Positions 25,022 to 63,116 are shown, counted from the first letter of the stretch. The stretch: 64,000 nucleotides of DNA from Saccostrea cucullata (GCF_032062105.1 NW_026932763.1:372001-436000), one strand, 5' to 3'. The notes: generated from the sequence alone by a model not told the origin. Translations and numbers: made by a program.

Positions 25022-28000
25022 TCATTGATTGTAGTATATACTCGTGCCAGTGCATTGAATATGATCACAAACAGCTTTATTCACCAGATGATATTCATCC
25101 TAAAAATTACATCAATAGATTAATCCATACAAATGTTGAGTACAGAGTAAATTAAGAAACTAATTTTGTAGATATCGTAACAATTTATAAGGGATTTCGA
25201 ATGGAATGCCGGGTATTTAATATATATTTGTAACCGTTTGGATTAATTATTTAACAGGGACTTGAACTTGGCCTTTTCATTGTATAAATGACAAAACAAC
25301 TGACGAGGTTGGAACAGAACTCCGGTCTTCTGACTTGAAGTTGTCTGACAGCAGTGAAGACGTCCACACAACCATCCATGTTGATCTGTTGTATCACGTT
25401 ATGAACGGCACAGAAAACCCCACATAATGCTGCACCATCCCTGGTAAAAAATATATACGTCAGTTTAACAATAATTATGTGCATCAATTCTCCTCGTATT
25501 TTGTTTCGACATTTAATGTGATCTTAAAGAGCAAATCAAATTCTTAGATGACGCCCACTATACGTTGCAATTTATAAGTAGGATATGGAGATAACGAACA
25601 GTATAAAACTCAAGAATTTCAAAGACAAAACTTTAAAACATTTAAACCTAAAGATTGTTTATCAAAGTTAATGATTATTTCTGTATTAAACTATTAAGAA
25701 GTTAAAGTCTCTGACGTAAATAGACAACCTGCTAACAATTGTGATGGGAGTTTCTGTTTCAATATTTAGTGTGGCTGAGACCAGACTCCGAAGTTGAGAT
25801 GTGTCAAGAGGGGTTCCGGAAGAATGTATGCTGATCTTCGGTTCTATTACTGTCACGGTATGAACCTCCTCTTCATTCTAAAGAACGAAGCTTGTTGTAC
25901 TATTAAGAGTGCATGGCCGTTCTTTAATTTTTGATTCAAGAAAAAAAACTACTCTATTTAAACACGCATTTCCAAAAATACCTAAATAAATAAAATAGAA
26001 AAAAATATGTTGCTTAAGAAAGATTTAAAAAAAAAAACATGCACATTAAGTTATTCCTTCTTACATTTTTCTCCAGAATGTGAAGAGTAGTGCAGGTAAG
26101 GTCACTTTCAGATCTGTTTTGAATATGTATGGTGAAAGGGGGTACTGCATTTAAAGATGAAGGGCGTGGTAACCATGTTTTACTCTATATAAGAAAAAGA
26201 AAAATAGATTGATGCATTTAAATATTCTGCAAATAAACAGAAACCAGTAAAAAAAAAGTATACTCTGAGACAAGAAACAACTTTTAAAAAAAAATGTATG
26301 GAACATCTAACCTACCGGGGAAACAGATGTTGAAAGTCACTACCCTCTCAGGTAATTTAAGCACCATTAATCTTCTTTACTCACCTTTTCAATGGATTTA
26401 TTTTTGTGGGATGGGTTGGGAACGGATCGATGTACATGTGGTTATCTGGATATTTTATACTTAATAATTTATTATAATTATTTTTGAATGTAGAAGATTG
26501 AACAAATATTGACCATCAGCTTATATCTTAAAAAGTAGTCAAAGGGAAAAATCAAGGGGAAAAAGTTTGATATTATATTGCATATATATTTAAAAAAAAA
26601 TGAATGTTCTTCCAGGAGATAGGACATGTAGTGCCGCACAGATAAAACGGCTAAATGGACATTTAAGTATAATGTAGCAATCTGTTTATTTAAAAAAAAA
26701 AAAATCTGAAATGAGGTCAATTTCATACCAAAAAGAAGAAAAATAAAATAATCAGGGAACGGCAAAATATTAATTTTACTTTATATCACCTTCATCTTTA
26801 AGCTGATAAAGAATTATCATGTTCTTTTTGTTTATTTGGTTTTGAATTATTATATCATTTTATTTCTTTTTTTACTCTCCTGTATTGTATTTAATAAGAA
26901 TATCAGCTTTCTTGTTTAAAGTCATCATTTCGTAAGTTCTATGGTTGATACAATGACCTTGTCAGCGACTACGGTTTATCATTAAGTATAAGTCAATTGC
27001 TGACTGATATTTTTCATACTCATTGTTAGTGCATTATTTAAACATTGAATTTACGACAGATTTCTCCTTTATTTCCAGATCAAAAAGGAGCATACGGCAG
27101 GTGTGACCGGTCACCAGGGGATGCTCACTCCTCCATGGCACCTGATCCCACCTCTGATGTTTTGGAGGTCTACGTTTGCTCTGCTCCTATTTTGTATTGT
27201 TTTATGGACTTTGATATTGAATACTGCTCGTAATCTCCATATCCTTCTATCCACTTAATCTACTTTATTACATTTTGCAATCAAGAAATCGACCAATTTT
27301 TACAATTTGTCAATAAGTCGGATATTAGATTTCGGAAAAAAATAATCCCAGGCAAATTTATACTAAAAAAAAACGTATTTCTTTTTTTATATATTGCTAT
27401 TTTTCTTCTCTGACATGATTACCTCATCTTTGAAAATTATGAAAATGCTTTTTGTATATTTTGCTTCAAAAACTATTAATTTGCCTTGATACATAAGGTT
27501 TACAGAGATAACTCATCACCGTCCGACAGCTGGAATGGGTTCTCTTTGTAAAATATTTTTTTTGAATAAAGAGTACAAGAGCACAAAGTATATTAAAACG
27601 TCGTTGTTATTCACAACCTTAAATTCAATCTTTGCAAAGGAGAAGAGTTGAATTTTAGATAAGTGACACAGTTTTACGTAAGATTCAAATAAGCAACACT
27701 CAATTACCCTCCGCTCTAACCGTCATACAGAAAAACATGTATAAAATAAAAGGAAGCATCGCTCTTTCTCATTATCAACATGCATCAATTTCAACAGAAG
27801 AGTATATTTCTACAATAAAACATAAAAAGCATAACCCTTAAAATCATCTGAGCCCAAAGTAATACAATTAAAGAATTAAAATTTCAATGTTATAATTTAA
27901 TGTAATATTTTCAATATTTCCCTTTTCTTATTTATGTACACCTAACCCTGGGGCCCGGTACTTGACAATTTTTATAGAGGGATTATCGCAATCATGCTAT

Positions 28001-28850
28001 CAGTTTAATGTCCAGGATAAAAGTAGAAAATTTTATGAGATTGTACCCATTTTGACGGTTTTGGCCAAAACATTAAAGTCAAGGCCTAGGGGAAGAAGGG
28101 ACCAAAACATTCACCATATTTGTTTCTCTTCTTTTATAGGTGTTATTTGACAGATTGTTATAAATCGGTACAGCTTCTGCAGATAAGAACCTAAAAAATT
28201 TCAAAAATAACGAACGAAACCCAATTTATTACGATGGACAAACACGGATTGGAAAAGGACTCCCTAGTCGCTTAAAAGTGGAATCATTTTTAGTAAAATT
28301 ATCAATGTTTCAGCCTTATATATCATTACATACCGAATCAATCGCGTGAAGAGGATCCATACAGACGACAGTGTCAGATTCATGATCATTAAGCAGGCGC
28401 AGGAAGTCAACAGCGTCCTCTTCCGTCGGATATTGCGTCACAATAAACGCTCTACTGTTAGTGTACGACTAATAAAAGAAAAAAAAAATAATAAAACGTC
28501 AACAAAAAAGTCCTTGATCTAAAATGCAGACTAATTTTCTCTTGCAATAATGCGAAATATGGTTATAATGCAAACAATGAAGATTATATATTAGAACGTC
28601 TTCATAGCAATACACGTCGCTATAGATTTTTAGGAATAAATTTACAACAATTTCAAATGCTAAGATCTTTAATACTTACTGGAACAGATACTGCATTGAT
28701 GAAGTTTCCTCGTTTAAGGACGGTAGAAGAAAGATGAACACTGTATTTATCCACTAATTTAGAAAAAAAATAAGAAAATTCTCGGATGTATGTAGACAGT
28801 AAAATAAATGATCCTTCATCATTGAAGGTTGTCAGAGTAATATCATTCCC

Positions 28851-28907
<57 letters not shown>

Positions 28908-31900
28908 AATATTTTAAGTCTTATCTTGAACATAATGGGTAAGTGAGGTGTTAATATATATCAAGGATACACCATGGCTAAATTAATTGGAAAATAGAAA
29001 GTTTCATATTTTTGTACTTTTTTTCTAAAGACAGAAATTCTGTGTTTTGGGAGAATAATATTGGGGGAAAACAGAAAATATATAGATTAAATTAAGATTT
29101 TTAAATATTTTTATATCATAGGGACTAACTTTCAGAGGGAAGGTTTAGGATATGCATCCAAAAAGCTGAAAAACCTGTGATTTTCACATAATACGACTAA
29201 GCCTTTTCATAACATGCACCATACACTAAGGGACGATGGATTAGATATTTAAGAAAGTACACATAAGAGAAACAAATAGTTTCTAACTACAGTTGTATAT
29301 CTGGAAATATAAGATATTTATCCTATATATTATTCAATATGTGACATTTGGAATTTTCAGTATGTTATCAACTAAATTCAGACAAAAGCTCTGGCATGCA
29401 AAGTATTAGGATTTTTTTTAAATTGGCAAAACGATCCTTTCTTTATGAGAAAAAAGAATGAAAAAAAACAAGATATATAGGTAAAATGTTAGGTACATGA
29501 ACTTAAAACGCTTTATCATGCGTTTTGTGACCAATTATTGCATGTATTAAGTAAATTTAATATATAAAATACAATATAAAATAACAATCAAAAGTTTTCT
29601 ACACATCAGCAAACCAAGTATTGCTGTTATGTTGCAATACATTACTCGTTGGCTCACATAATAGTGAAGAAGAAAATTGGTAACAGAATGAAATAAATAA
29701 AAATGTAACCTACGTGGCAATAAACGACTGGAATGGATATCCCCACAACCATCCCTTGCCAGCTTGAAATCATCTTCATTATATTTAGGTTGTATTTTCA
29801 TTAAAAGCTATTTATAAAAACAGTTAAACATTTTATAAAACCGTAATTATAAATTCTTGATAACGATAAGAATTTTACTCCAACAAGAGATGAAAGGGTT
29901 AATTTTTGAAAAGGGACAAAGAATTTATTTTTTCTCTTAAATACCATTAAAAATCAATAAACATCAGAAAGACGCATTCTAAACAAAACCAGTTAGACCT
30001 TTGTTTTCTTCATAACTGGAAAGTTCTATTCTCCTAAAATGTCTTACTTTGCTTGAAAACTAGACGCTAAATGCTATTTTGTTCTGCCTGCTAATCATTA
30101 TTTTGAATCTGAATAAGAGTACTGATATCACAAAACATTTTTACTTATCGAATTTTGATGTGTTTCAATGGTATCATGATGTGTGCTGCTATCATTTTTA
30201 AAAGAAAATGCTTAATTAAATAAAAATGAAAAGCGGTTATATTTATCATAATTATTTTCGATCACATAAATAACAGAATTAGAAATAAAGAAATCAAACG
30301 TCGGTTTAAGATCAACACCCGTATACATATGGTTAAGTCAGACGTATTTTATTCATTCACTTAGGCTTATCTTTCTTTTTATCATAACATATCATCATCG
30401 ACGTCATTACAAGTAATGGAAGCATTGTTTTCATTATTATTATTTTTTTTGCAAGGGTTTTTCTTTAAGGAATGATTGTCTTATTTTTCGATTTCAAGAT
30501 GTGATCAATCGAATGGCTTGCGTGATAATTCGCATAAACTCCGAAGGCGTGTATGCCTAAAATTATCACGCAGACCAATCGATTGATCATCGTCATAAAA
30601 TTGAAAAATCTGACAGTTATTCCTTATATGTACATGCTTTGATTCCGCCAATCCACATGCTCCATGCCCTGTTTCTCTTTAGCTGTTAGTCTCGCCCTGC
30701 ACGAGTCTCAGACAAAGACATTGGAAATGTAAATATTTTGTAATATAAGGTGTACCTGAAATTCTTTTCGAAGCGTGTTCTGATTTGCTGGTTTGTCTAC
30801 TGTCATGGCGTTTGCATTTGCCGTAAATTCCTCAATTGTTTTGACCATCACCGGCGATTTGAAGATTTCGTTCAAAGAAAGAAATATGGTCATATATTGT
30901 TCCTGAAACAAAAATGTAATGTTAAATCCAAAGAAAAAAACATACAGGCCTGCATAATAGTTCTTCGTTCGTTTATTAATATTTACTTATGGATTTTGGC
31001 TGTTAAAAATTATAATTTTAATAATGTTTAAGTTATTTCGAAAGTGAAAAGTTCTTGCAATCTACTAGGAAGCTAGGATTGGAAAACTAGGTTCATTATC
31101 GTAAATAATTATAATCACTTCATTGTTTTAATCTTTGGAATTTTTTTACTTGCATTTTTTAAGCTAACATAGCAGATTTTCAGTAATTACACTCAAAAAG
31201 AAAGTAATTCGATGAATAGATAAATTAACTGAAGATACCAATTTTTTTAATCATTTTTTTTTATTCATATTAATAAATAATTTATTGTTATTATTTACTA
31301 ATGAGAGTTATCAGTAATTCTCCTCTTTATACACAATTTATTATTAAAGCGGTAGAGGGAAAGCTGGATAAAATGTACATTTTTTTAAATAATAATTTTA
31401 TTAGGCTTACATAGGTTTGGACCATATTCATCCTGCTTTCTCTCATCTTCTTGACATACTCTGCGACGTTAACTTTCCCTGTCTTTCTTCCTATCTTGTT
31501 CAGAACGTCTATTGCTATGTATGTCCCGGTTCTTCCTATTCCTGCACTTAAAAGCATAAAAAAAATACTCTAATTAGTTGTTTAACGTCCTCGAATTTTT
31601 AACTTCTAGAAAAGACACAATTTACTGTAAGCAGGTGCAACGGGGGTAACCACAACAAATCGTACATTACAATGAAAACAGACCGAAATATAAACGAATC
31701 TTTTCTTCTTTTTTGCGGAAAGGTTTAACCAGGATTATAGTCGATTTTAGTCTTTGACGAACGTGTCATTACCATTTTGATCATTAAAATTTATCAAAAG
31801 AAAAGTTTTATCCAATATTATTTCAAAATCATTTTATTATGCAGTTTTACCTGCAGTGTACATCAATTGGAGAGTCATTCTTATTGGTGCCTGTTTTCGT

Positions 31901-34900
31901 CACGTGATAAAGGAACACAACAAGGCAGAGAGGTTCAGGAGTCCCATGGTCGGGCCAAGCAGTGTAATGGTATTGTGTTACAAAACGAGGCCTTTTTGAC
32001 TGTAATTTAAATATTTTCATAAAATATTTCAAGTCATTTATTTTAATTTTCTGATTTTTAATACACAAATCAAAACAGAAATGGGAACATTAAGCCTCAC
32101 TGGATAACCTCATTTCTTTGAAATTTCTAATACTAAAAATGACGGGCGGGTTCTTCCGCTAATAATGAATCTAGACTCAGTGATAAAAATGTCATTGAAA
32201 AGAGCAATGCAATACTTAACGTCATAAATAATACCATTACTAATTGCATGCTTAGATTATTTCCAAACTGTGCATGAAGGCGGAAGTTAATGAAAGTAAA
32301 ATATGAAAGAGTTTCTCTATCGTGGTTTTCATGAGATGAAACCCCATTCGGTCTTTTAAGCAATGATGTATTATCAACTGCTTTACCTCCTCTATATGCT
32401 AGTAGCTCACCTCCTTGTCGTTAATGTTAAATTTACGAATACTGTAGAATGCGTACTCCTTTTCCTCTATCATTTTCACAGACATCTTTCCGTAGATTAT
32501 GTTCTGGTTAACTTCCGGCCAATACTTCGCACATTTGGTCTAAATAATGATTTAAAAGATTGTAATAAAATAAATATGGAACATTGAATTTAAATTTCAT
32601 AATGTACATATTTTCTTATAATTCCTTTTATTTCGGTTAATAGAACAAACACATATTTGAAATATATGAAGTTTTATGGAGTTAGAAAAAAATGGGAACA
32701 CTTTCAGATCCATGTTACCTTATTCCCTTCTTTCAGGTTGGTTAACATAACAATGATGGATACATGTTCCTGCCAAACCATTGTCCAAAAATCGTTTACC
32801 GTGTTCTGTTTTGGTCCTAATCATATAGCATGGAAATTCTCATAAAATATATCGCAGATGACATTTAAGATTCTTACAGACTGTTACACAACATTGTAGA
32901 ACAAGCATTTCCCTAATTATCAAGCTATATTAAACTGATATTCTTAGCTTAACTTTAACTTTAAATTTTAAACTTAACAAAGGGATGTGTTAAGACACTG
33001 TTTGAAATACTTGTTGTAAGTCGAAAAACAATACATACTCATATATAATTATAAAACAGAAGTATCTGAAGATATCGAAACTGTACTAGAATGGAAAAGA
33101 AAAGTAGCATTTGGAACTGAAGCTCTGCAAAAATAACACACGTAATAATTATCTCTATTTGCGTGTCTTTTTGAGACAAGATTGCAATAAGACTATAATA
33201 GCTTACTTATCTCTGACAAGTGGATCTGAAAATTGACAATTTTGTATTGTGTATCAATAATGATAATAATGTAATTTACCTTGGGCAGCAATATATTGTT
33301 GTTCTTGCTTTGCACCCTAAAAAAGCAACTCTACTTATCATATTTTGCATTAAAAACAATAAAAAGAGCATACGATAATACAAATGAATCTAATCAATCA
33401 GGAAAAAAATTCCTATATGCAGCTTAAAGAGAAATGTGTATGGAGCTGTATATTTTAGTTTTATAAACTAAGATTTTGGGAGGAAAGGTACTATATACAT
33501 GTGAACTAAATTGATGTTAACAAGCATCGCCTTATTGTTGATAAGGAAAATACATACGTTGTTTTTTTTGTGTTTTTTTTTTACGTTAAGCTTTTCTTTA
33601 CCTGTATGTAATTAGCGTTTATGTAATCAGATGCCGAATCAGTTTTAAGTAATATTCTGGAGTGGTCATCTGGATAAAAAAAAGATATAGAATATAAATT
33701 AAGATATCTTTTAATGCAATCCAATGTATGTTACCATAAAAAAGAATACAACAATGCAATCTCGAAAAAAATGCAACGATTAACTAATTATGCATATGGA
33801 ATGAATGTACATATATTTGTAAATTCGATAAAAAAAAAATACAACCAAGTTAAATACTAACATGGAAACGTTGTCTTATATCTATTCTTGAGAAGATTTT
33901 CTTCTCTCTTTCCAGCTTCGCACTTGTATCTTTCTCCATATGGCAAAGTCTTTAAAAAATAAATCACAAACATAAAGCTTTTGATCCCCTTCTATTTTGG
34001 GGTGTCTATGTATACATGTTTGTGCCGTACAGTTTTCTTATTATTGTACTGTTAAGACAGATAATGTGTAAACAGTGTGTTTATATTTAAATCACCAATA
34101 CTTTTAACATGCAGAGAAAAAAATCTTTAAAACGATGCCCCTTTTCTCAAAGAAATGCAAATACAGGACTATAATGGTTGTATTTTTCTCAGGTGCCTAC
34201 TTACCGCATATTCCCTCTGAAACCCATCATCTTTATTCTTCCTTTTTTCAGCTATATATGTATCCAGTTGCTCTAGAGGTATGTCCCGAATCACTACTTC
34301 GTTTGCATAAAAATCTCCGTAAGGATTTTCCGAATGTATTTGCTCATCAACATCTTCATCAACTTCATCATTTCTTTTTTGAACGCTTAGCAGTTTTTGC
34401 ATTCTGGTTTTCTTACTTTTATTTCCTTGATCAGTTGATGACCAATGATTTGAATTAATGCTTGAGAAATTTGTTTCGGGTATTTCTTTATTTGCTAAAA
34501 TAAGTAACAAAGCAATTAAATTTATTCCTGTAATAATGTGATGAATCAGAATCAATGTGTTATGTAAATAACGACTCACAATTTTGAGTTCTGTTTGTAT
34601 CTGCTTTGGACCTGTTATCTTTCTTTAAACTGCGCCTTCTATAGAGAAAACCGAAAATGATTAAAATGCAAAGTATCGAAATGCATGTGATATATGTAAA
34701 ACACGATTAACAAGAATGAAAAGTATAACTGTACAACAAATGATCATGAATGCAAATCTAAAACGTATATTGACCGTTTTAAAGTAAGAACTGCTATAAC
34801 AACGACGATACACGCGATAGTAATTCCAGAAACCCCACCAATGATCGTCCCAATATTGTTACCATTGCCTTGTTGAGGAGACGTTTTCTAAAATATTAAT

Positions 34901-37900
34901 ATTCATAATGATAAGATTTTGATATTATGCATATACAAAGTTTTTTTTAATTTCCCTAATAAAGAATAAAATTCATTAGATGCTATTTATTTATTTCATT
35001 GAATATCCAAAACCAGATTGATTCGTGCATATTGACCAATTTCGAGTATTACGACTATTGGCTAGATTCAGAGGAATTCCTAAAAGTATTTTTTCTTACA
35101 TCAAAAAGAATTTTCCGATATAATACATGTACATATTCAAAAAAAAAATAATAATTTCAATATTGGAATGTAATTTTAAAAAGACGTATTTAGGTTTGAA
35201 ATCTTCAAACAAAAATCTAGAGATATGATTCATAGTGAATCGAAGTAAAAAAAAATAACTATGGTTAACTGTGGTATACTTTTTCAGAAAAAATCGGGTT
35301 CAGAGATACATGGTTTACTGTACCGACATTGCAGGGCATTCTCCATTATGTGGATTGCAAGTATTATTTACACAGTGGCTGCTACAGTTCTTTAAGCAAT
35401 TCATGCCATACGTTCCTGGATCACATACTATAAATGAAATACTTATTGAATATATTTCATCTTACAGTTACATTCGTAAAATATAACCTTTTCTCTTCAA
35501 CAGAAATGCACAGATTCTTCTTTCCCCTGAGAAAATATGTGATGTGATAATAAAAATACCTGTTAAACATAATAAGTCTTTATATCCCTGAATACATCCA
35601 TTTAAACATGTTCCATTGATATTGTGACATTTATCTCCATCTAGACACTTGCCACAGTGTTGACTGCAGTTCTTGCCGAACCTTTTGTTTAAACATTCTG
35701 TATATAGATATAAATATATTAAATATTTTCCTCTTAATAATATATATAAACGACCTTTTCAAATTAAAGATAGAGGAATCAAAGTTAAACGACGTATGAT
35801 TTCTTTTTTTTCATATATAATCTTTTTTAACTTTTTTTCCCATTTTAAACATAGCCCCAAAACTCTAAATGTATATGTAATATGAATAATGCATTATTTA
35901 TTTTTTTGATAATGCTTACCATTTTTGCACTGAAGTCCCTCAAAACCAGGCTGACAACCGCCCAAACATTCACCAGTTGTTCGATTGCATCTGCTAGGTA
36001 CACCACAATTTTCATCACATTGTTCCATACAGGTTATACCGAATTTTCCATCCGAACAAACTAATACCAAAATAAAAGAAAATAACAAAAAAACTTACAA
36101 ATCTAGTATCTTACTTAATTTTTAGAGTATTTGTGTCATGATTATTAAGCAAACAAATGTAAATTTTAATTATTTTAAAACTTTTATGGACTCATGGAAA
36201 TGTTACCGTCTTTACAAAGATCCCCTTCAAACCCAGAATCACAGCCTTCGAGACAAGACCCATTGATGTGATGACATTGTTTGTATTCCTGACACGCTCC
36301 ACAACTCTCTCCACATACAGAGCCGTATGTTCCGTTATCACATTCTATTAATTGGGTGGAAGGGATAGTTGAAAAGAATGAAAGATTTTTTTTTCCTAAG
36401 AAGATCATTTACATAATCGCCTGCATTTAATTTAAAACATTTTAATTTTTTTAAAAACATTTTACAACATTTTAAATGCCAAAGCTTTGCTAAAACACGA
36501 AGAAATTTATTCTTAAGTAGATAGTGGCGTAGGAGGCATATTCTAAAGTAAATGCATAGAGGTTTATTACTCGAGTATAAGATTGGTTATTCAATTTATC
36601 AAAAGCAATGGGAAGAAAAAAATGTTTGTTATAGTTATAGATTCCATTAATTGTATAAGACGGTTTATCTAAAATAGTTCCATTATGATTCTGCTATATT
36701 TAAATAATTTGCTTCGTTGTAACACATCAATTAAATAGATAAATATTTAGTTCATATCGTAAATCATAAGTTACCTACGTCACAGTCAGTTACGTCAATT
36801 GCAAATTACCCCAGGTGACGTTGATTGTAAAATTGCTCAATTTGATTGAAATTTTAATTGAAAGGAAGGGAATGAAATGTACCTTGTTCTCGCCATTTTT
36901 TTTTTCTGATTGAGAAAGTGAATAATGCATGTCTTTCAAAAATCCTGAAGTCATTAATATGATTATGTTTTTTTTTTTCATTTGTGACCCAGAAATATGC
37001 ATATTCCGTTATCTTTTGCAAAGCGTCAATTAGCTAGCAAAATAATATCTTAGCCATCAGACAATTACATGTATGTTTTATAGCAGTTATAAATTGTATA
37101 TAAAGTATCAAAATCAGTGAATCCCAGGGTCGTAAACAGCATTTTTTTTATATTGTTTATCTATTAATTTATTGAAAATATTAATTGCAATCCTAATTAA
37201 ATATAATTCAATTCAACTGGGGTTCCTTACTCTTTTCCTTGTTCTTTTTTATTTTATTTTACTTTTGCTTTTTCATACTTACGTAGTTCACACTGATGTC
37301 CCTTGTACCCAGGTTTACATCCCAGACATGCACCTGTCTCTATGTGACAATAACGACAGTTTGTATCAGGACAAGGGAGAGAACAATCTGGACCATAGAC
37401 TCCTACATTTTGGCAGCCTTAAAAGTAAATGAAATCCATCTAAGTATTCATAAATGATTTAGAGAATTTGGAAATATGTTTAATGTTATAAGAAATATAG
37501 GCTTTAATATTTTTTTTTATTCATAATTATTTAAATTTTTATGATGAATTAAGGAATTGATGCCATTAACATTGCATGCTAACTTTTAGTAATTTCGATA
37601 TAAAAAAACACCTGAGTGCTAAAAAAAAGTATATGTAAAGTGTATACCATTAACTTCAACTTCACACAATTCAACGTGTGCATATTGGGACAATTCCCAG
37701 GCATTTTCACGTGAAGGCTGGGGTCTTTCATTGTAATATATGACGTACTGGCCATGAACAGGGCACCTTATATTGACAACAGCCGGTATTGTGGCTCTAG
37801 TGTACTTTTCATCGTGTAAACATAGATAACCATGATGTCTGTTTGTTGTGTTGGAAACATAAACGTAAAATCCCAAAAATCGGGTAGTGTAGCCATTTGA

Positions 37901-40900
37901 AAAACCTAAAAAGAATACATTTATCTATATAAAGCTAAATTCCTTTCCATGTTTGTTTTTTTCACCGGTAATCATCAATTGGCTATTCTTCCTTTAACCT
38001 ATAATTGTCTTGTAATTGAGTGAAAAGTAACATTAGTTTCTCAAGAATTATTAATTCTAAACTATTGAAGAAAGGACTTTTATTATTTATGCTGTTTCAC
38101 CGGATATTTTAATCTGTATTTCCTCAAGTAATTGATATTCAGCAAATTTTGTAGTCGATTTAACATCAACATCAGCACTTATTTGTCACTGTTAACATCG
38201 CAGTACTGTTAAGGCAACACTTTCTGTAAAAAGTAATGGAATCCGATGCATATATGTTTAAAAGTTTTATTTTTCAGCAAGACACTCTTGTTAAAATGGC
38301 TTTATGGTATCTTGATTGATTGATTAATTGATTGTATATTGTTTAAGGTCCCCCTCGAGAATTTTTCACTCATGGAGACGTCACCGTTTGCCGGTGAAGG
38401 CCTTCAAATTTAGACCTATACTCGGCACTCAGGGCCATTGAGCAGCGAGGAATCTTTATCGTGCCAACGCCTGCCACTGACACGGGGCCTCGGTTTTTAA
38501 GGTCTCATTTGAAGGACCCGCAACTTTCACTTTAAAGTGCTTAGAGCATGGCAAAGGAACAGTCGCTACCTATTTTAACGACTAAGTCAGTCGAGGCCGA
38601 GATACGAACTCACGACCTCCCGATCACGGAGCGAGCGCTCTACCGACTGAGATACCGTGAACGGTTTAAGGTATCTTGAAGAGTATGTCCATCGCTTTTC
38701 ACATCGGTAATTTTTTTTTTGACTTTATGTGACTCTTAAGTCACACGGACTCCGGTTTAAGTCAAATTAAACAAAATCTGCAAAGTCAATGCAAACAAAA
38801 AAATAACGGCAAAATGTTTTAGGAGTTGCCAATGTATGTATACTTTCTAAAACGTAATGCTCATTCAGTTAGTTGTTCAGCTAAAACTGACAGTAGTGTA
38901 TGAAAAATAGGATATTTTCCTACATGTTATTTCATCGCGATTTATAAATTACCTAAAAGATTACACGTACACAGATATGAGCACGACTTTTTTGAAAATT
39001 TTACAATAAAATAAAAAAAATGAAAAAAAAACCTTTTAGCCCTTACACTTTTTGATTAAAAAATAAATTCTGATCCAATTGTTTTGTAAAACACGCTTTG
39101 ATTGGATATGTCACTGATGTTTGAAACAGATAAATGAACATTAAGGAGTGAAAGCTTTTCATTGTGAAGCCATATAGGGCCATACTATAATATTCAAATC
39201 AATATCATGAATAGAAATATATCTATATTATAGGATTAAACGTTCTTTTTGAAAAATTTATCGATGTGTAAACTCTTGACATTTTACTCACAAACTAAAT
39301 AAAAGTGCGAAGCACTTTTATGTTAAGTTTGTGAGTAAAATGTCAAGAGTTTACACATCGATAAATTTTTCAAAAAGAACGTTTAATTCTTATAATTCCA
39401 ATATCGAATTTTTAAAAATATTTAAATTATTTCTCTTTGAGGCCTCCATACAATCTGTTATTTATGGACGGCGTAGGAATACATTTTACCGTAAAGGAAC
39501 GTAATCGAGATGAATTTCGATAGAGTTCAACTTAAATTGTCAAAACAATCGATAAATAAACTTATAATAACTAATCAAATGTTGTTTAAGTCAACAAATA
39601 TCTTAATTACGAGTTTACTTCAGAATAATTCGTCTTTGACCATGGCCATGTTGACATAAGCAACAACTCTCATAGGGAAAGTTGCAGACCGACGACGCCT
39701 TCAATTTGCACTTTTTTTTCAAATATTGAAACAATATAGAAAGTAAATATGAATTTGATGCTAATAGGGCAAGAGTTTGAGGTACGTTTCTTTTCCCTGT
39801 CAAAACGATACAGACTGAGCTTATTTTCTACGTTTGAACGTTGAGACAGCGATTTTTAAAATTCACACTCGTGATCGGACAGTGACATAAACATTTTCAC
39901 GGCGTCCATCAGTTAGGCAGTCTAGTATGTTGCCAGTTTTGTTTAAGCCCTAATATTAAATTTAAAGTTTCTTGTATTCATTATTTAGCCAGAACAGACC
40001 CAGAAATAACTGCTTTCATTGTTTATACGATAACCTAGTAGTGTCATCAAGAAAGTAGTTCTGATTGAAAGAATTTATCGATGTGTAAAAATTTTCTGGA
40101 ACGTGTTCTCGTCCAATCAAAACACAGGAAATCAATAGATAAAATGAAGATTGGAATTATATGTATATATATTTGTATCTTTATGTGATGGTTTTTAAGC
40201 AATTTATTACATTTTTCTTCTATTTTTTAGAATAAAGGATATGTGGTTGCATGCTAATTTAGAAACAAAACTCTGTGATAAAAATGATGAATTCAACTTT
40301 TTTATCGTCAATTCCTTTAACTATGCAACAATATACCTTAAGAATCTCAGTTGATTCGATACACAAGAGCATGTTCAACGTATGAAGAATTCCTAAAAAG
40401 AAGTTAATTACCGACAGAGTCTTTTAGATTTTAGATTTTTAAGTCATCATTTCGTAACTATTTATACACTTAATTGACGACGGATTTTCCTGTATCCAAA
40501 CAGTTTAAAAAAGGGTGGAAACATTTTTTTTAGGTTCAGAAAGTCTATCCTGTTATCTTTCTTTCTAAATATATTTTGCTTTAATACATATTCTCCCACG
40601 ATTATGTTTTGAAATGTATAGAAACCTAATGTCTCTTTAGATGCACAAGTGATATAATGACCCGATTTTATTTCAAACTGGGTATGAATATATTGCTCAC
40701 AGAAACTCTATTTTAAATTTTATTGACATTTTATGCATCCGACTGTATATATTTGATGTTCCCTTTTTATTACAATTATATTTATCTCACATTTTAATTT
40801 ACACAATACCAAGTGTGCAACAAAAATTTTCATTTGATTTAAATATAACCACAACGCATTTTTTAGAGTATAAAAGCGCTGAATAATTACCCCATGTGGA

Positions 40901-41436
40901 ATCGTCTGTCCTGTAGTATATTGTTATATCATGAATGCTGTGGATGGACGTCAAGTTTACCCACCAAGTCAGATTACTGTACCCATCAGCTGATATCGTG
41001 CATTGTCCTCCGTAGGCTGTTAACACACTTTTTAGTCCATCAACAGCATTACTGGAATCAAAGGTAGCTTGTCCGTAATTTCTATTGGAACTGTAGTAAA
41101 CATGCGCTTGGTACGTTGGGTTATTGAAAGCTATATTTTCTAAAAATGAATAAAATGTGAAATAATGTGGTCATTTGCTCACTACCATATTTTTTTTAAA
41201 GAATTATAATCATTTATTAAATCTTACTAAATTACATGAACGGTTTAGAAAATGTTTCGTTATAAGATTTCATTTATTTCAAATTTATTTATTTTTGAAG
41301 AAGATTTTTCTTGAAAAAAAAAATGTTGCTTCAATTCCTGAAAATTTATTAATATTCTCATAATACGATTTTAAAAGATCTTACCATATCCATAAACAAT
41401 AGGTAGTACTGTTATTATCAGACCCAAAGCTAGCAT
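25022..41436 (-). CDS. Receptor-type protein tyrosine phosphatase: signal peptide, F-type-lectin-like domain, 5 EGF-like exons, TM, PTP D1 (active), PTP D2 (degenerate); 1104 aa
   Basis: 26 GT-AG coding exons in consistent phase, 3315 nt total: 41385-41436, 40891-41139, 37648-37905, 37283-37417, 36207-36344, 35920-36060, 35560-35697, 35324-35427, 34775-34887 (TM), 34580-34638, 34205-34494, 33862-33949 (KNRY), 33602-33669 (DYINA), 33280-33316 (YIAAQG), 32719-32816 (DFWTMVW), 32411-32539 (KCAKYWP), 31851-31999 (WPDHG), 31411-31546 ([10 protein letters not shown] across the junction), 30756-30902, 29714-29807, 28680-28753, 28334-28468, 26065-26184, 25729-25877, 25305-25440, 25022-25099. Start context GCCGCCATG. 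Confidence 0.93.
26890..27240 (+). mobile_element. Penelope-like retroelement 3' fragment in a PTP intron
   Basis: Degenerate FRKFYG*YNDLV at 26928-26963, followed by the GGTGTGACCGGTC...GGGGATGCTCACTCCTCC...CACCTGATCCCACCTCT block. Family assignment is from recall. Confidence 0.6.
28855..28907. repeat. (CT)n(GT)n compound microsatellite
   Basis: Direct reading. Confidence 0.95.
30466..30626. repeat. Imperfect ~160-bp palindromic element with CCGAAGG apex; partial relative at 50362-50468
   Basis: TAAGGAAT...ATTCCTTA ends, arms GATCAATCGA..TGCGTGATAATT / AATTATCACGCA..TCGATTGATC, apex at 30541-30547. Confidence 0.75.
38316..38664 (-). mobile_element. tRNA-derived SINE, second family (different head, shared Deu-like domain and tail)
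   Basis: tRNA-like head at about 38590-38664, AAACCGAGGCCCCGTG core, GAAAAATTCTCGAG..TTAAACAA(TCAA)n tail. 15-bp TSD TTTAWGGTATCTTGA at 38301-38315 and 38665-38679. Confidence 0.88.
39228..40161. mobile_element. Element beginning with a near-perfect ~165-bp palindrome
   Basis: 62-bp perfect arms 39235-39296/39326-39387 and GCGAAGC apex at 39307-39313. TATAATTCCAAT (39391) is inverted at about 40150-40161. Third AATTTATCGATGTGTAAA at about 40072. Confidence 0.7.
40270..40460 (+). mobile_element. Penelope-like RT C-terminal relic
   Basis: Broken translation [11 protein letters not shown]...CNNIP...[19 protein letters not shown]. Confidence 0.65.
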
Positions 41437-44520: not shown

Positions 44521-44553
44521 ATTCATTCATTCATTCATTCATTCATTCATTCA
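44521..44553. repeat. (ATTC)n microsatellite
   Basis: Direct reading. Confidence 0.95.
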
Positions 44554-47418: not shown

Positions 47419-48427
<1,009 letters not shown>

Positions 48428-49475
48428 CAAATAAATGGTTTCATGAGATCAATCAAATGATAAAGAACAACTGTCACTATAGCAGCTTATATGAAATGTT
48501 TACCGTTTATGAGCTATAACTCAAAATCTTTCTGGGACCCAGGATCCCTTATTTGAGGGGCTAGCCCTCTTTTAGTGATGAACGAGATTTTTTCAACATG
48601 TCTCAACAACTTATTTTCAGTACAAACGATACATAAGGAGATATAAGTAAATTTTTCTGCATTACGGCATTTACATTTTTCACCCTATCTAGCGCTGTTT
48701 TGAGCGCAGAAGTAACAAAAAAAAAAAAAGATATGCATAACTGCAATTCTTCAATTATTTAAATTAAGTAGAATATTGCCCAAACTTTTGACGTCTCTGG
48801 GCCTTTATCTGGAAACGAATGGTACCATATTTTCATTTAAAGGGAAATAACTCCAAAGCAAAAGATAATTTTTGAAATGTAAAAAACAATCTTACTGAGT
48901 CTTGTAACATCTGAATCTCTAATTATTTGTACCAAATCGGTTGAGAAATGAACGGTTTATGAGGTTTCAAAGGCATTTAGGGAAAAAAGAATAATAGGGA
49001 ATAATCTTAAACAGAATAATCAGTGCATGTAGGCCTTCTGCACAAGCGAAAGACCTGAATTACGGTAATCGGTAGAAGGCATTTACTTGTAACGAAAGAC
49101 CCTAATAACTACTAAATACTATAATATAAAAATTAAAACATATCATTGAATAAGTATTTTATCAACAGTTGCCATCTGGAAGCTTCTTTCACTGATTGTT
49201 CTTTGGTTTATCATTTTCTATCGCAACCCATTGGAAGGTATTGAAAAACAAGAGACAGAAACAGAAACATGAATGTAAACAATGAAATTATAGATTTGGA
49301 CAGCATAAATCAAGCTTATGATAACATTCAAGGACAAAGAATTGCATGCATTTGATTTTTGATTTAAAAAAAAAAATATTTAAAATATATCATTTTCAAA
49401 AAAGAAAATCTTCAAAGCTAAGCAATTCAAATTTATCAATTTTTCTTTCAAATGTTTCAGAACGTCAATATTTAT

Positions 49476-49539
<64 letters not shown>
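49476..49539. repeat. (CT)n microsatellite
   Basis: Direct reading. Confidence 0.95.
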
Positions 49540-49541
<2 letters not shown>

Positions 49542-49575
49542 AGTAACTGTGTAAAATTATTAAGACAGGTTTCCT

Positions 49576-55270: not shown

Positions 55271-55339
<69 letters not shown>

Positions 55340-56955: not shown

Positions 56956-56987
<32 letters not shown>

Positions 56988-57678: not shown

Positions 57679-58824
57679 TTTGTTGCATTACAAACTTATA
57701 TACCCTTTCTCTAGGAGTTAAGTTGGAAGATTACTTTGTAGTAGACCTCAACTTCCTTATTTATATTTTAAATGCCTGTTTGCAGGCATATTTGTTCAAA
57801 CCGGTTTAAAACATTTGTTTAAAATTAAAATCAAATCAAATGGATTTTTAAATAGTGTTCATAACACCGTTTTGAATATGTTCCAATTAACATTCAACAG
57901 CAGTACGACGGAGTAAGTTCGTAATTTATGAAAAAGTATTTCCAAATCAAGTCTTGAAATAGATCGTTCAATTTAAGGTCAGAATGAATTTTGAAGCAAT
58001 ATGTTTATAATATGCCAATTAACCAGTAGGTAGAATCATCTATGAAAACCCCCAAATTTACATGTCATCTGACCTCGTGTTTTAAATGATATTTAAACCT
58101 AGGTGTCAGGTTCTTTTGACAAGATTCCAAATTAATCACAGTAAGAAGGCTTCATTTTCTGCTTAATTCATTTATTCTTGTAGCAGTAGAAAGAAATTTG
58201 CACCCTTGTAAGTTATATATTATGGACAATGTTATTGGGGATTAGAAGGATTCTTTTTGTCGTATATTTCGAGTATACTTTAAACTGAAGATTGGTCATT
58301 TCTTCTATATTTCTACTAATAAGTACAATGCACATTCATATGAAAATACCTCATATACTTATAAAAACAACCATAAATTACCGTATAATTGGAAATTCTA
58401 GCAAGTCGCAACACTATCCTCAGAAAGAGGTATCCAATTTTAAGCGAGATGTTATGTTAGCTTAACATGCTCACTTATGAAGCTATTACATATAAAATGT
58501 ATTTGATTTTTAGCAATGTTCTATTTTAGCGATCTCAGAATCCTCGGTAATAATGCCAAAATTTAGTTCCTCGCTTAAAATTCTTTTTATACGGTATTCA
58601 TTTAATAAAAATGAATGTCACTAATGCAGGAAAATCCAGAACAATGTATTAAAATGTGTCTGTATGTGAGCATATATTTTCATTATGCTTGTTGATCCTT
58701 TGAAGCTAGGTTGAAATGTATTTGTGTAGATTAAATACAACACTAGGCAAGTGACATATTTGTATACCTTGAATTTATTACGCAACTTCGAGCCAAAGGA
58801 GTTCGCACGGATCCCATATATTAC

Positions 58825-59878
58825 AAACTTTGGTGGCAGCAGTGGAATCTTAAAATACATTATGAATGCAACGGGGAAAGAACATATTGCTCAGATTGCA
58901 AGTATGCTTTAAACGATGAATTTGATAGAGGAGAAATTGAAGAGATGTTAATTTTACAGTTCCATTACTAAAAGTGACAAGCAGCATGAAGCAAGAAGTC
59001 TTAACATTTTATCACCTGGGTATTATGACCAATGTGAAATGTCGCCATATTCATTCACAGACCGCAAAGTACAAGGAAAAAGAAATTACTATAAAAATGA
59101 GTCTAGAGAAAAGTCTCGATAATCATATACCAGTGTCAGAACACGACCAAGTGTTCACTTTGCTGACGAACATTGTAAAGGATAAGGGAAAGTTGACTGA
59201 TTAAAAAGCAATCTATCAATCGGAGCAGGTGATCGTAAGAAGCCTTCTGAGCTAAATGTTTCTAGAGACAATGCAAAAGTACCATTGCAGACATAGACAT
59301 ATAGGGTAGATAGAGACAATGAAATTGCCAGTAAGTCAGCGACTTATGACGACTCAAGCTGTTGACTTGATTACACGTGCCATTTTGAAGCCTGTACCTA
59401 CATGAATGGCTGGGACTAACTGAAAAGGCATGTTAATTACTTTGTCACTGCGTGGACAAGCAAAAGCTGTGCTAGGCAACATGCCAAGTGACAAGGAACA
59501 GCAATACAGCACACTTATTTGATCTTTGCACAGGAAATGCAGTAATGCAGTAGAACTGATGACCGCCAGTCAAACACACACCCAGATGACAAAGAACCAA
59601 GTACATTTTTGTAAAGGACCCAAAGTGTTTTCTGGAATCGGGACTTTAATTAAGGAATGAGGGTAGTATATCAGTGTATTAAGGGCGAGAATACAAAAGT
59701 ATTCTTTGACACCGGAACAACTGTTACATATGTATTCACTTGTCCGCAAAGTTGCATGAACTGTCCGACCACTGTCCGAACAAACCTACAAAAAATTACC
59801 CAGACCATAATGTCTGCTAATGGTACACCATTGTCAGTCAGAGGGAAGGCGGAGCATCGATTTTGCAAGCAATGACTT
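58825..59878 (+). mobile_element. Ty3/Gypsy LTR retrotransposon relic (PBS, gag, protease)
   Basis: Putative LTR end TACA at 58825. PBS-like TGGTGGCAGCAGTGGAAT at 58831-58848 (tRNA-Leu type). Gag-like HFEAC..MNGW / LRGQAKAVLGNM at about 59380-59485. Protease-like FDTGTTVT and SANGTPLSVRG in ORF 59657-59875. Stops and frameshifts. Confidence 0.8.
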
Positions 59879-60057
59879 TAAGAAATGTTGTTTTTATTCA
59901 GTGCTTTAAAACCAAGAAGAAACATCTACCTATGATAAACACTGACCAGAAACAATAGCAGTTTTTAAGGGAATTTCCTGTTTGTTTTCATGTATGCTAC
60001 AAATACATCCTTAACCAAAAAATACTATAGTTTACTATTGTTAAATGTAGTTATAAC

Positions 60058-60168
60058 GTTGACACTTTAAAAAACTTTGGTTTACTAAAGCGAAAAGTTT
60101 GACACTTGGAAAAACTTTGACGAAAACTTTGACACTTTGAAAAACTTTGGCGAAAAATTTGACACTTT
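60058..60168. repeat. Minisatellite, about 30-bp unit
   Basis: TTTGACACTTTGAAAAACTTTGRCGAAAA-like unit, about 3.5 copies. Confidence 0.8.
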
Positions 60169-60439
60169 CATTTACAAATACAGTTATCTATATTTACTAT
60201 AGTTAAATATATTTTTTTTTGTTTTTTTTTTATTTTTTTGTTCTATCAATGACTATTTGCATAATTACTTTATCTGAGTGTAAATAGTTCCTATGACGTA
60301 CATGTTTGTCACAAAAAAGCCCAAGAGAAATTAATGCAGAGACATCTAGCATTAAGTCTGGGATTGTTAAATCTATTTATTAAAAACTATTTGTTTTAAA
60401 CTTTGATGTTGAAAATTAAATTATATAAAAATGAATCTG

Positions 60440-60445
60440 TTTATT
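60440..60445 (-). promoter_or_regulatory. Putative polyadenylation signal of the EGF-repeat receptor
   Basis: AATAAA about 90 nt downstream of the stop codon. Confidence 0.5.
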
Positions 60446-60539
60446 ACTGCGAGACATATTCGGTCAACTTCGCGGCGCCTCGCTGCGCTCGCTATAACTT
60501 TGGCCAATATGAATATAAGATGTGAACGTTCAGATCCGA

Positions 60540-63116
60540 TCATAATCTGATGGTAGCGCCAGTTCCCCCCAGCTCCTGATATCTGTTCTTGTCGTCTTCA
60601 TCAATTTTATTAGAGCTAATTCCCATGTTAAATGATGTTGACTTTGTCTCTTTATCTTCTTTATACATCGATTTCCTTATTTTTCCTTTCAGATTCCATC
60701 TACAGAGATATTCAAATTGTGTTGAAAATTGTCAGTTTTTTCCCTAAACAAATCTAGGAATTTTGAAATATGAGAGAGAGATAAAGAGAAGGAGAGAGAG
60801 AGATGTTTGCTTGTCCTATATATTCATCAAAGATAACTTACCTATAGATACAGATGTAGGCAATTAAAATGCCGATTATTATTAGACAAACACAGAGAGA
60901 GGCAAGAACACCATTAAATCTTGCGAGACAATCAGTATCAATAGTTTTCTCTGCAACTGCATAGAGAAAAAAAATCATATCGATAATTTTGGATCTATTG
61001 ATGTAACATAATATTCCTTTATTTCAACGTTGTGATAACATTAAGTAGATTATTAACTATTAACCTTGTAAACACATAGCACCCTGCCATCCACCAATAC
61101 ATCCTTCATTACAATATCCTGTCACGTGGTTGCAGTCACGTGATGACTTGCAGAAAATGCTGCATTCTTTTTTGCAATTCTCTCCATAAAATCCTGCCTT
61201 ACACACTGTCATTTGAAGTAAAAGGTTCATTTAATTTACAAAGAACTATGCTAAATGAAATATTTTGATTTCTGTTTTAAACAGTGAAATATAATTTCTA
61301 CCCATTAAAGGTAATGTGTTAAAAGTATAAAATCCCTACTGACATACTTATGCCTTATTTTCTACATTTTATTCTAAATTATGAAAGTTAAATTACTTTC
61401 ATTGCATAATATTCCTATATATCCATCCGAACATATTCCAGGACAAGAACCATTTACATAGTGGCAGTTTGAGTCCTGACAGAATCCACACGAATTAGAG
61501 CAGTTTTCACCGTACTTATTTTCCTTACAAACTGAAAAAAAAACATTTCTATTTATTACTTTTTCGTCCATGAATTTCATTTCATTATCCTTTTTTCATA
61601 TATTCTCGTACATAAGAAATTGAATTGTCTTATCGAAAATTCAGTTCTTAGTAATAAAAAAAATCAGGAGAAAAATAGCATTAAAGTTTAAAAGCCATAT
61701 TAAAACAGTAATCTGGAACCTTCTTCGCATCGAGGTCCCTCCCAACCTGGTTGACATCCTCCCTCACATTCTCCTGTCGTTCTGTTACATCTAAATGGTA
61801 CACCACAGTTCCCATTACAATTTTCATTACAGTTGATGCCAAATTTTCCAAGAGAACAACCTAATATAAATTTCTACATTGTATGCCGTTTGTCTGCTAA
61901 AGTGTTTATGTATTGTTAAATGATATGACCGATGATAATTAGTCTGGTAGAGTGTTTACGTATTCTAAAATGACAAATAGAGCCGATGATAAAAAAAAAT
62001 GCTAGCTATCAATGCTTAACTTAAATTATTAATTTTTTACCCGTTTTACAAAAAAATCCTTCAAATCCTGCATCACATCCTTCAAGACACGACCCATTGA
62101 TGTGGCGACATTGTTCATATCCCAGACAAGCTCCACAGGTCTGTTCACAATTCTGTCCATATCCTCTGCTGCATTCTGTTAAAACCAATTAATAAACTAC
62201 AGTGTAATTCAATTAAATATTGTAGAGAAATGTGTTTAATAAAAATAACTATTGCAACACCCTAGCCCAAAGATGCCCAGTGAGAAGAATTTGCACCATA
62301 AAAGAAACCTACGTATCAATATATTTAGCTCTGAATGCTCATTTAAGGTCAAAATTTGAAGGCCGTGAGGTATGATATCTCAAAAGAAGTCTATCAATGG
62401 TGGCTTAGTTCAATTATATCATTTCATATCAGCTTAAGGTGTTGAAGGTAGCGATCATCAAATAAGCATAACCTAAAAAAAAACCACTTTTATTTAATAC
62501 TTTTTCATCAATGAATTTCATTTCACTATCCTTTTTTCATATATTCTCGTACATAAGAAATTGAATTGTCTTATCGGAAATGCAGTTTTAAGTAATTAAT
62601 AGAAACAGGAGAAAAATAGCATTAAATTTTAAAAGCCATATTAAAACAGTAATCTGGAACCTTCTTCGCATCGAGGTCCCTCCCAACCTGGTTGACATCC
62701 TCCCTCACATTCTCCTGTCGTTCTGTTACATCTAAATGGTACACCACAGTTCCCATTACAATTTTCATTACAGTTGACGCCAAATTTTCCAAGAGAACAA
62801 CCTAATATAAATTTCTACATTGTATGCCGTTTGTCTGCTAAAGTGTTTATGTACTGTTAAATGATATGACCGATGATAATTTGTCTGCTAGAGTGTTTAC
62901 GTATTCTAAAATGACAAATACAACCGATAAAAAAAAATGCTAGCCATAAATGCTTAACTTAAATTGTTAAATTTTTACCCATTTTACAAAGCAATCCTAT
63001 AAATCCTGCATCACATCCTTCAAGACAGGATCCATTGATTTGGTGACATTGTTTATACCCTAGACACGCTCCACATCTCTGTTTACAATCCTGGCCATAT
63101 CCACCACCGCTGCATT
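60540..63116 (-). CDS. MEGF10/Draper-like multiple-EGF single-pass receptor, 3' portion; short tyrosine-motif tail, no PTP domain; 5' exons beyond the window
   Basis: Phase-1 EGF exons 62979-63116, 62661-62801, 62041-62175, 61720-61860, 61397-61531, 61065-61205. TM exon 60842-60956 (GVLASLCVCLIIIGILIAYICIY). Last exon 60540-60699 (...IDEDDKNRYQELGGTGATIRL* as assembled). Confidence 0.88.

Follow-up and report, generated by a model that had tools for sequence, protein, structure and literature searches.

In a 64,000-nt stretch of the genome of the oyster Saccostrea cucullata (GCF_032062105.1 NW_026932763.1:372001-436000; hereafter, the window), two adjacent genes, gene 1 and gene 2, are very likely members of a very large, tandem-clustered family of single-pass receptors that exists in two cytoplasmic versions, one ending in a tandem protein tyrosine phosphatase (PTP) and the other in a C-terminal ITAM (immunoreceptor tyrosine-based activation motif). 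An on/off receptor system for this family is plausible from its sequences. The two genes of the window are a weak example of such pairing, because the lectin domain of gene 2 is dead, its epidermal growth factor (EGF) modules are no closer to gene 1 than to the rest of the family, its ITAM is frameshifted in the assembly and a duplicate of gene 2 lies on another contig (C17283) without a listed PTP exon; the idea belongs to the family. The original prediction for this stretch had proposed a receptor pair in which a homologous ectodomain is joined to a phosphatase in one gene and to an ITAM tail in its neighbour. The homologous lectin/EGF ectodomain and the two tails stand, but the special pair dissolves into a family of hundreds of genes.

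Two neighbouring genes with different cytoplasmic tails

Gene 1 and gene 2 are separated by 19 kb and are both encoded on the minus strand. Translation of the EGF A and EGF B exons of each gene gave cysteine-rich, six-cysteine EGF modules in phase 1 of the minus strand, and a plus-strand reading of these four exons was ruled out by stops throughout; the predicted same-strand neighbours are thus retained with the correction that they read on the minus strand. The EGF A exons (36207-36344 and 62979-63116) share 30/45 residues and the EGF B exons (35920-36060 and 62661-62801) share 32/46, all four being bordered by AG...GT, divisible by three in length and starting in phase 1, in agreement with the coordinates, sizes and phases first proposed for the shared exons. 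3' of EGF B, the proximal EGFs of gene 1 and gene 2 are just 33-40% identical, which agrees with the claim that the neighbours are unrelated downstream. Domain searches were run exon by exon, and lectin exons were joined only for the tree described below.

Gene 1, at 41.4-25.0 kb, comprises a candidate signal peptide, a lectin domain, five EGFs, a transmembrane (TM) segment, an intact first PTP domain (D1) and a dead second one (D2). It matches residues 18-1070 of P0122, a full-length paralogue of 1095 aa, colinearly and with nothing missing. Its features are as follows.

41385-41436, minus strand: candidate signal-peptide exon, predicted from sequence; donor G/GTAAG, phase 1
40802-41170, minus strand: lectin exon 1 (galactose-binding-like, F5/8 type C 2; PF22633), within an open frame
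37622-37924, minus strand: lectin exon 2
37257-37418, minus strand: EGF0
36207-36344, minus strand: EGF A exon, phase 1-1
35920-36060, minus strand: EGF B exon
35318-35758, minus strand: EGF C and EGF D exons, the membrane-proximal, PTP-type-specific module (from paralogue comparison)
34747-34887, minus strand: transmembrane exon
30657-34450, minus strand: juxtamembrane region and PTP D1 exons (Pfam Y_phosphatase, exon by exon)
25022-29807, minus strand: PTP D2 exons, the last of which (25099-25022) includes the stop

The signal-peptide exon is kept in the homologous stretch 5' of gene 2, outside the window (C14900:445522-445575, on the window's own contig), and PF22633, weak on the single lectin exon of gene 1, scores above the Pfam cut-off in full-length homologues. 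Pfam Y_phosphatase matched the PTP exons of gene 1 individually, and the D1 motifs are complete: KNRY (~33.89 kb), DYINANY, YIAAQ/GPKQNT..DFW, KCAKYWP, WPDHGTP, VHC/SAGIGRTG, a loop divided between two exons at the slash, and the QTyEQY Q-loop. The TM segment proposed for this gene is present, and the intact D1 is confirmed by the KNRY, WPD, HCX5R and Q-loop motifs, all of which were found. In the active-site loop of D2, the catalytic cysteine and arginine are both replaced. With a single TM segment, an ectodomain, the D1 motifs and a second PTP domain all present, as in classical tandem receptor-type PTPs (RPTPs), gene 1 is by predicted architecture a complete receptor tyrosine phosphatase. 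When compared with solved structures, the cytoplasmic half of an oyster relative (P0063) matched RPTP alpha best (6uzt, E 1.7e-119), then epsilon, sigma, LAR and CD45. Two annotated proteins from the contig of gene 1, P0122 and P0187, were considered as its own product and rejected, both being encoded by other genes.

Gene 2, at 63.1-60.4 kb, encodes a ~55-aa tail and a TM segment on an exon of its own, preceded by six EGF exons (A, B, A', B', E and F); good splice sites flank all eight EGF, TM and tail exons, and each has an open frame. Its features are as follows.

62979-63116, minus strand: EGF A exon
62661-62801, minus strand: EGF B exon
62024-62188, minus strand: EGF A' (duplicate of A), open frame; an RNA joint puts its 3' end at 62039
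61720-61858, minus strand: EGF B' exon, 45/46 identical to B
61397-61531, minus strand: EGF E exon, ITAM-type-specific proximal module; RNA joints
61065-61205, minus strand: EGF F exon; RNA joints
60842-60956, minus strand: transmembrane exon; RNA joints on both sides in 3-4 runs
60530-60699, minus strand: tail exon, coding part; stops at 60542-60540 in the assembly frame and at 60532-60530 in the family (ITAM) frame
60565-60570, minus strand: run of six G, one more than in paralogues and RNA contigs
60358-60381, minus strand: AATAAA and mRNA 3' end, where contigs end

The A'-B' exons are a tandem duplicate of A-B inside gene 2, with B and B' identical at 45/46 residues and the A and A' frames visibly alike. 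This duplication was examined as a possible junction between a PTP-type and an ITAM-type parent and rejected, both copies being about equally far from gene 1 in DNA; in the same test, gene 2 EGF A was closer to paralogues than to gene 1.

In the assembly frame, the tail of gene 2 reads ...IDEDDKNRYQELGGTGATIRL-stop, in which the acidic stretch DEDDKNR is followed by YQEL, and YDRI lies in the +1 frame. A whole-genome DNA search with the gene 2 tail exon retrieved ten paralogous tail exons at 78-87% identity, all ten having one G fewer than the window at the run of six G. Eight of the ten read ...DEDDKNGYQELGELALPSDYDRI/L-stop, following the pattern ...YQ/LELGE...Y-D-R-I/L-stop, and of the remaining two, one is without a stop codon and one stops ahead of the second tyrosine. 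Because ten paralogues have one G fewer and eight of them read the full ITAM, the YDRI once described as latent is in the real, normal frame of the family; the different TM segment and the ~55-aa tail with acidic residues and then YQEL are as described before. The ITAM peptide of the family tail, with both tyrosines, is YQELGELALPSDYDRI. Of the two YxxL/I motifs, the window copy keeps YQEL alone in the assembly frame and both once the extra G is absent, so that a single base in a G run decides whether the second ITAM tyrosine motif is read. The acidic residues typical of ITAMs are found before the first tyrosine in the gene 2 tail subfamily (DEDDKNG/R-Y). A back-translated ITAM motif matched 66 genomic sites and its reversed control none; length is the same at 64/66 sites, a further site has one extra residue in its spacer, and the window copy alone is out of frame. 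Judged by sequence, the family tail is a canonical ITAM, consisting of acidic residues, YQEL, eight residues, YDRI/L and the stop. A third invariant tyrosine (YKED/YIEE) lies ~12 residues past the TM segment in 8/8 aligned tails.

Gene 2 is transcribed, spliced and polyadenylated independently, because matching contigs carry spliced GT-AG joints (CT..AC on the plus strand) at 60699/60842, 60956/61065, 61205/61397, 61531/61720 and 61858/62039 and end just after AATAAA, at 60358-60360 in three runs, ~20 nt past the signal. No transcript running on from gene 2 into gene 1 was found among the contigs placed on 58501-64000. Splicing of gene 2 onward into PTP exons and a lack of transcription, the two outcomes named beforehand as speaking against the proposal, were thus not what the contigs showed. 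Contigs of three runs from three studies (X1, X3 and X8) omit one letter at 60565, which restores the ITAM, and besides this gap the tail contig has 6 differences over ~340 bases of tail exon and 3' untranslated region. Because transcripts of other samples are without it, the extra G stems either from an assembly error or from a rare allele. At 59973-60156 and 63101-63284, contig depth is very high in all four runs (to ~1300), with many loose ends and back-joints, and these segments are probably dispersed repeats transcribed inside many genes; one of the two matches a gene 1 intron (36765-36845) at 75%.

A clustered family with two cytoplasmic versions

The genome holds at least 319 candidate copies of the lectin exons, at least 66 ITAM sites and ~30 PTP exons (WPD exon identity, 53-79%), a large number of these PTP exons being on contigs with lectin and ITAM exons. 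ITAM and PTP genes are interleaved on three contigs (C14900, C11818 and C3112), and along 521 kb of C14900 the two types alternate. Intact ITAM-type genes encode a signal peptide, a lectin domain, ~nine EGFs, a TM segment and the ITAM tail, and six sampled PTP-type genes encode a lectin domain, EGF0, more EGFs, A, B, proximal EGFs ending in a D-type module, a TM segment, a juxtamembrane region and the PTP. The membrane-proximal modules follow the tail: the last EGF before the TM segment best matches gene 1 EGF D in 6/6 sampled PTP-type paralogues, most of which also have an EGF C-like exon, and gene 2 EGF F is 77-84% identical to its counterparts in ITAM paralogues. Across the family, proximal EGFs, TM segment and tail sort by tail type, whereas lectin exons 1 and 2 and EGF A and B do not, and the A or B exon of several PTP-type genes is nearer to that of gene 2 than to that of gene 1.

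A tree of joined lectin exons (72 rows) showed no separation by tail type: the 9 rows with the PTP label required 8 label changes, and shuffled labels required 8.6 on average. The original prediction had named a clean split of ectodomain trees by tail type without clustering as a result against it; instead, the trees do not separate and both tail types are interleaved in clusters. In the same tree, lectin exon 1 of gene 1 and that of gene 2 are sisters, with a Shimodaira–Hasegawa-like approximate likelihood ratio (SH-aLRT) support of 98. A single locus with alternative ITAM and PTP 3' ends was considered, as the annotated protein P0025 shares its first three exons with a PTP gene (L024), and was rejected, the remaining exons lying 100 kb off behind another lectin exon. 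P0025 (NCBI, C14900) is probably a chimera of RPTP exons at ~151 kb with EGF, TM and ITAM exons at 51-47 kb, and the apparent identity of L024 and P0025 in the lectin tree stems from this chimeric NCBI model. Another model, P0005 (Saccostrea echinata 'stabilin-2-like'), is probably chimeric as well, its ITAM tail (...YQELGD) running into the lectin exon of the next gene.

In 42/79 retrieved proteins, the ITAM lies ≤6 aa from the C-terminus, with a spacer of 8 residues in 36 and of 9 in 6, where ITAMs have spacers of 6-8 and at most 12. The 36 spacer-8 tails have an invariant E and L in the first motif and Q and G in 33/36; both tyrosines are invariant by construction, as the search pattern requires them. 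Across genera, D/E/N are enriched at -6 to -3. ITAM-ending proteins come from S. cucullata, Saccostrea echinata, Ostrea edulis, Crassostrea virginica, Magallana gigas and C. angulata, and both tail types occur in four oyster genera. A PTP-tailed member has 359 database relatives at E<=1e-30, and all 120 of the 120 listed are from oysters. A profile built from eight ITAM tails gave two matches among 1.84 billion representatives and the TM segment and tail of an ITAM-type protein (P0003) gave two more, a scarcity that is an effect of clustering by the long ectodomain and of length filters, not rarity; with the EGF-to-tail half, 76 relatives were retrieved. P0003, XP_062620190.1, bears the NCBI name 'multiple epidermal growth factor-like domains protein 10', and the present names in general (MEGF10/11, PEAR1-like, SREC-like, RPTP alpha/epsilon/T/kappa-like) hide the lectin domain and the ITAM. 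Four oyster homologues (P0015, P0036, P0043 and P0044) have longer tails with two to four ITAM-like repeats (YQELGPRTE.SDNG.YQEL...), the copy number varying, and a 199-aa protein from a JGI/IMG metagenome (P0002) contains four tandem units of the oyster tail motif, YQELGE(L/I)..PS.Y, with I at +3 of the second tyrosine in the last copy only.

Elsewhere in the window, 12000-23700 on the minus strand holds 2-3 tandem copies of a ~5 kb unit with common open frames (13677-13934 versus 18756-19112, 15277-15444 versus 20783-20995 and 15566-15838 versus 21133-21537). The left edge (1-1521, minus strand) has open frames of 219 and 287 aa, and 10626-10781 is a run of N.

Gene 2 and the case for paired receptors

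The contig DNA 10 kb beyond the window (L012:1-10000, equal to C14900:436001-446000) was examined for the 5' end of gene 2. Over 1057 nt 5' of gene 2, the DNA is 80.7% identical to the signal-peptide exon, lectin exon 1 and upstream non-coding DNA of gene 1, and the lectin exon 1 found there is the closest genomic relative of that of gene 1 (73% amino acid identity, others <=62%; 73-83% across comparisons). This shared 5' module is the sole pair-specific signal and looks like a recent exchange between opposite-tail neighbours. In the explanation that we consider best, and probable as a whole, the upstream DNA, signal-peptide exon and lectin exon 1 of gene 2 would be a recent copy of those of gene 1.

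A mechanism can be outlined for the family. Its members would share a plan of signal peptide, F5/8 type C 2 lectin domain, MEGF-type EGFs and phase-1 symmetric exons, each cytoplasmic version being tied, as it appears, to its own proximal EGF pair and TM segment. Ligands of the lectin/EGF ectodomains may be glycans or proteins. Once phosphorylated by Src-family kinases, ITAMs bind the tandem SH2 domains of Syk-family kinases; on ligand clustering, Src-family kinases would phosphorylate the oyster ITAM, Syk would dock and the haemocyte would be activated. PTP-type sisters with related ectodomains could join the same contacts and shift the phosphotyrosine balance, either dampening or priming the response. 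Beyond this, in a large and rapidly diversifying immunoreceptor system of oysters, and perhaps of molluscs as a whole, one interchangeable lectin and EGF cassette may have been rewired repeatedly, through recombination of exons with compatible phases, either to a canonical ITAM in cis that would signal through Syk or to a tandem PTP in cis, an invertebrate counterpart of the paired activating/inhibitory receptors of vertebrates in which the opposing arm is an enzyme and not an immunoreceptor tyrosine-based inhibitory motif (ITIM); we offer this as a tentative and rather unlikely proposal, of which the gene-1-like 5' module of gene 2 would be a fresh trace.

Several observations weigh against the pairing of gene 1 with gene 2, against its signalling logic or against the strength of the evidence. 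Gene 2 EGF A and B are up to 86% identical to those of other ITAM genes, versus 66% to those of gene 1. It had been asked whether gene 2 also begins with a signal peptide and lectin-like exons, and homologues of the signal-peptide exon and lectin exon 1 are indeed there, but lectin exon 1 carries an in-frame TGA where gene 1 has GGA, and lectin exon 2, like most of EGF0, has been deleted. Some NCBI models behind the tree labels are chimeric, adding label noise, and two YxxPhi motifs can double as endocytic signals. The runs with matching contigs are small sets from four studies, placed on 58501-64000, none of them recorded as RNA, whose RNA nature is read from the spliced joints; identity of contigs to the window in the EGF exons is just 93-96%, and a very close unassembled paralogue is possible there. 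In one contig, ~170 nt upstream of EGF A' could not be placed on 58.5-64 kb, and the 5' exons of gene 2 were not seen among the contigs. Gene 1 and gene 2 are clustered neighbours with differing signalling tails, as expected of paired receptors, and their outputs may be opposite. Near-identical ectodomains, also expected, were not found between them (EGF A 30/45, EGF B 32/46, proximal EGFs 33-40%, gene 2 lectin dead).

No lectin or further EGF exons for gene 2 were found in 63.15-72.6 kb. A duplicate of gene 2 on contig C17283 (L015/L004, C17283:6431-10189) is 97.7% identical in its 5' part and ~85% from EGF to tail; it has the same lectin-exon TGA, is without the A-B duplication and keeps an open ITAM frame in which the stop is lost (YYRIW...). 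Because the duplicate has the same TGA, the 5' damage of gene 2 is real and not recent. No PTP exon was found among the matches listed for C17283. This copy is a mosaic, and could be a haplotig or a segmental duplicate. Relative to it, the large intron of gene 2 contains a 7.8-kb insertion (~63137-70953 in extended window coordinates), which has long open frames resembling a mobile element. As the signal-peptide exon of gene 2 ends, and its EGF exons begin, in phase 1, the dead lectin exon can be skipped without loss of frame, and a transcript spliced in this way would encode a signal peptide, six EGFs, a TM segment and the ITAM. At best, the product of gene 2 would be a lectin-less EGF-ITAM receptor.

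That the two genes have no functional pairing at all, being neighbours in a birth-and-death array of MEGF10-like and RPTP genes that share exons by descent or shuffling and serve separate roles such as adhesion, scavenging or engulfment, is a close contender to which we give a little under an even chance. The sheer size of the family (359 RPTP relatives, with lectin exons numbering at least 319 and ITAM sites at least 66) fits such an array, as do the greater nearness of gene 2 EGF A and B to non-neighbour ITAM genes than to gene 1, the C17283 duplicate with no PTP exon among the listed matches and the broken lectin domain. Yet both tail types persist in the same clusters in four oyster genera, and lectins are unsorted by tail, so that opposite-type neighbours can be nearest relatives, as a system with shared ligands would show. 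For gene 2 itself, decay into a pseudogene in the window haplotype, with the transcripts coming from intact alleles of other animals, is possible, though we do not favour it. The lectin TGA, the loss of lectin exon 2 and most of EGF0 and the 7.8-kb insertion would all fit decay, the 5' damage being common to the C17283 copy, and so would the +1 ITAM frameshift, unique among 66 sites, and the other samples without the extra G. However, all eight EGF, TM and tail exons have intact frames and good splice sites, the dead lectin exon can be skipped in frame, a homopolymer indel is a common assembly error and the C17283 copy with the same 5' damage has an open ITAM frame, though its stop is lost.

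The tail itself could be read in another way, with the C-terminal YQELG-x7-Y-D/E-x-L/I serving not as an ITAM but as YxxPhi sorting or endocytosis signals or as a dock for another adaptor. YxxPhi is established to fit AP-2 binding, the receptors are annotated as scavenger-like or engulfment-like, and the metagenomic P0002 has four repeats of YQELGEL..PS.Y, in most of which the second tyrosine lacks L/I at +3. We regard this as quite improbable, for the spacer is fixed (8 in 36/42 and 9 in 6/42 proteins, with 64/66 genomic sites of one length), acidic residues before the first tyrosine and L/I at +3 of both are ITAM hallmarks that sorting signals do not need, and an oyster Syk binds an ITAM receptor (PMC6994640). 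As for the phosphatase arm, its members may instead be positive regulators that prime Src-family kinases, the two tails then cooperating, an unlikely though reasonable alternative. In its favour, the cytoplasmic region of P0063 has its best structural matches in RPTP alpha (6uzt, E 1.7e-119) and epsilon and matches CD45 too. RPTP alpha and CD45 can prime Src kinases by removing an inhibitory phosphate. On the other side, a kinetic-segregation study is reported to liken the triggering of Draper to that of mammalian immune receptors (PMC6219719). Both dampening, by ITAM dephosphorylation, and priming, by removal of the inhibitory phosphate of Src kinases, would fit the sequence. We return to a clustered family with two cytoplasmic versions, for which an on/off system is plausible and of which gene 1 and gene 2 are a weak instance.

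Comparison with known receptor systems

The known receptors most like the ITAM-tailed members are the engulfment receptors Draper, CED-1, MEGF10 and Jedi-1 (MEGF12), in which the tail ITAM signals through Src-family and Syk-family (Shark) kinases. Like these, the oyster receptors are single-pass, with many MEGF-type EGFs and a tail ITAM, and the oyster genes are listed by NCBI as MEGF10/11, draper-like or CED-1-like. They differ in an N-terminus formed by a galactose-binding-like lectin domain, with F5_F8_type_C_2 and EGF as the sole Pfam domains found in full-length members and no EMI domain among them, in a tail of ~55 aa with no NPxY in any of ten tails, and in an ITAM at the extreme C-terminus with the classic 8-residue spacing. 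The Draper ITAM spacer is longer than that of the oyster family. The oyster family also has dozens to hundreds of clustered copies, versus one to three genes. Draper is an EGF-repeat receptor whose triggering is reported to resemble that of mammalian immune receptors (PMC6219719).

For the PTP-tailed members, the tandem D1-D2 arrangement with an apparently active-type D1 and a degenerate D2 resembles RPTP alpha and epsilon (R4) and CD45, the ectodomains of which are unrelated, being short and glycosylated or made of FN3 domains. A closer architectural match to gene 1 comes from the snail Biomphalaria sudanica, in which SudRes1, a schistosome-resistance region, contains clustered, polymorphic GBD and MEGF RPTPs with domain loss between haplotypes and adjoining MEGF/GBD genes (PMC12297450). 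Gene 1 shares with the SudRes1 RPTPs a GBD, MEGF repeats, one TM segment and a tandem PTP, a likeness of architecture; the snail belongs to another mollusc class, and ITAM tails or an activating counterpart are unmentioned in the snail paper (PMC12297450). In haemocytes of Crassostrea gigas, CgIgR, an immunoglobulin (Ig) receptor with a classical ITAM, recruits CgSyk, a Syk with two SH2 domains (PMC6994640). CgIgR is likewise an oyster surface receptor with a cytoplasmic ITAM, but it is an Ig-domain protein from a single gene for which no PTP-tailed sister has been described. In open-access text, we found no literature on the ITAM of the present oyster family or on its pairing with RPTP sisters.

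The vertebrate paired receptors (KIR, LILR, Ly49, SIRP and NITR) are similarly clustered and fast-evolving, with similar ectodomains on opposite tyrosine outputs, and their tails have been swapped repeatedly in evolution. In the oyster family, lectin and EGF modules take the place of Ig or C-type lectin domains, the ITAM is carried in cis and not by an adaptor such as DAP12 or FcR-gamma, a covalently attached tandem PTP is presumed to form the opposing arm in place of an ITIM for SHP-1/2 recruitment, and ectodomain identity between gene 1 and gene 2 is 65-83%, not >90%. If both tails do act on one phosphotyrosine pathway and related ligands are bound, molluscs would have evolved a matched activating and phosphatase-bearing multigene system independently of vertebrates, which would bear on how innate immunity attains specificity and sets thresholds without antibodies. 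The PTP-tailed architecture lies in the schistosome-resistance locus of the snail (PMC12297450), and with a counterpart bearing an ITAM tail, that locus would gain a signalling logic open to test.

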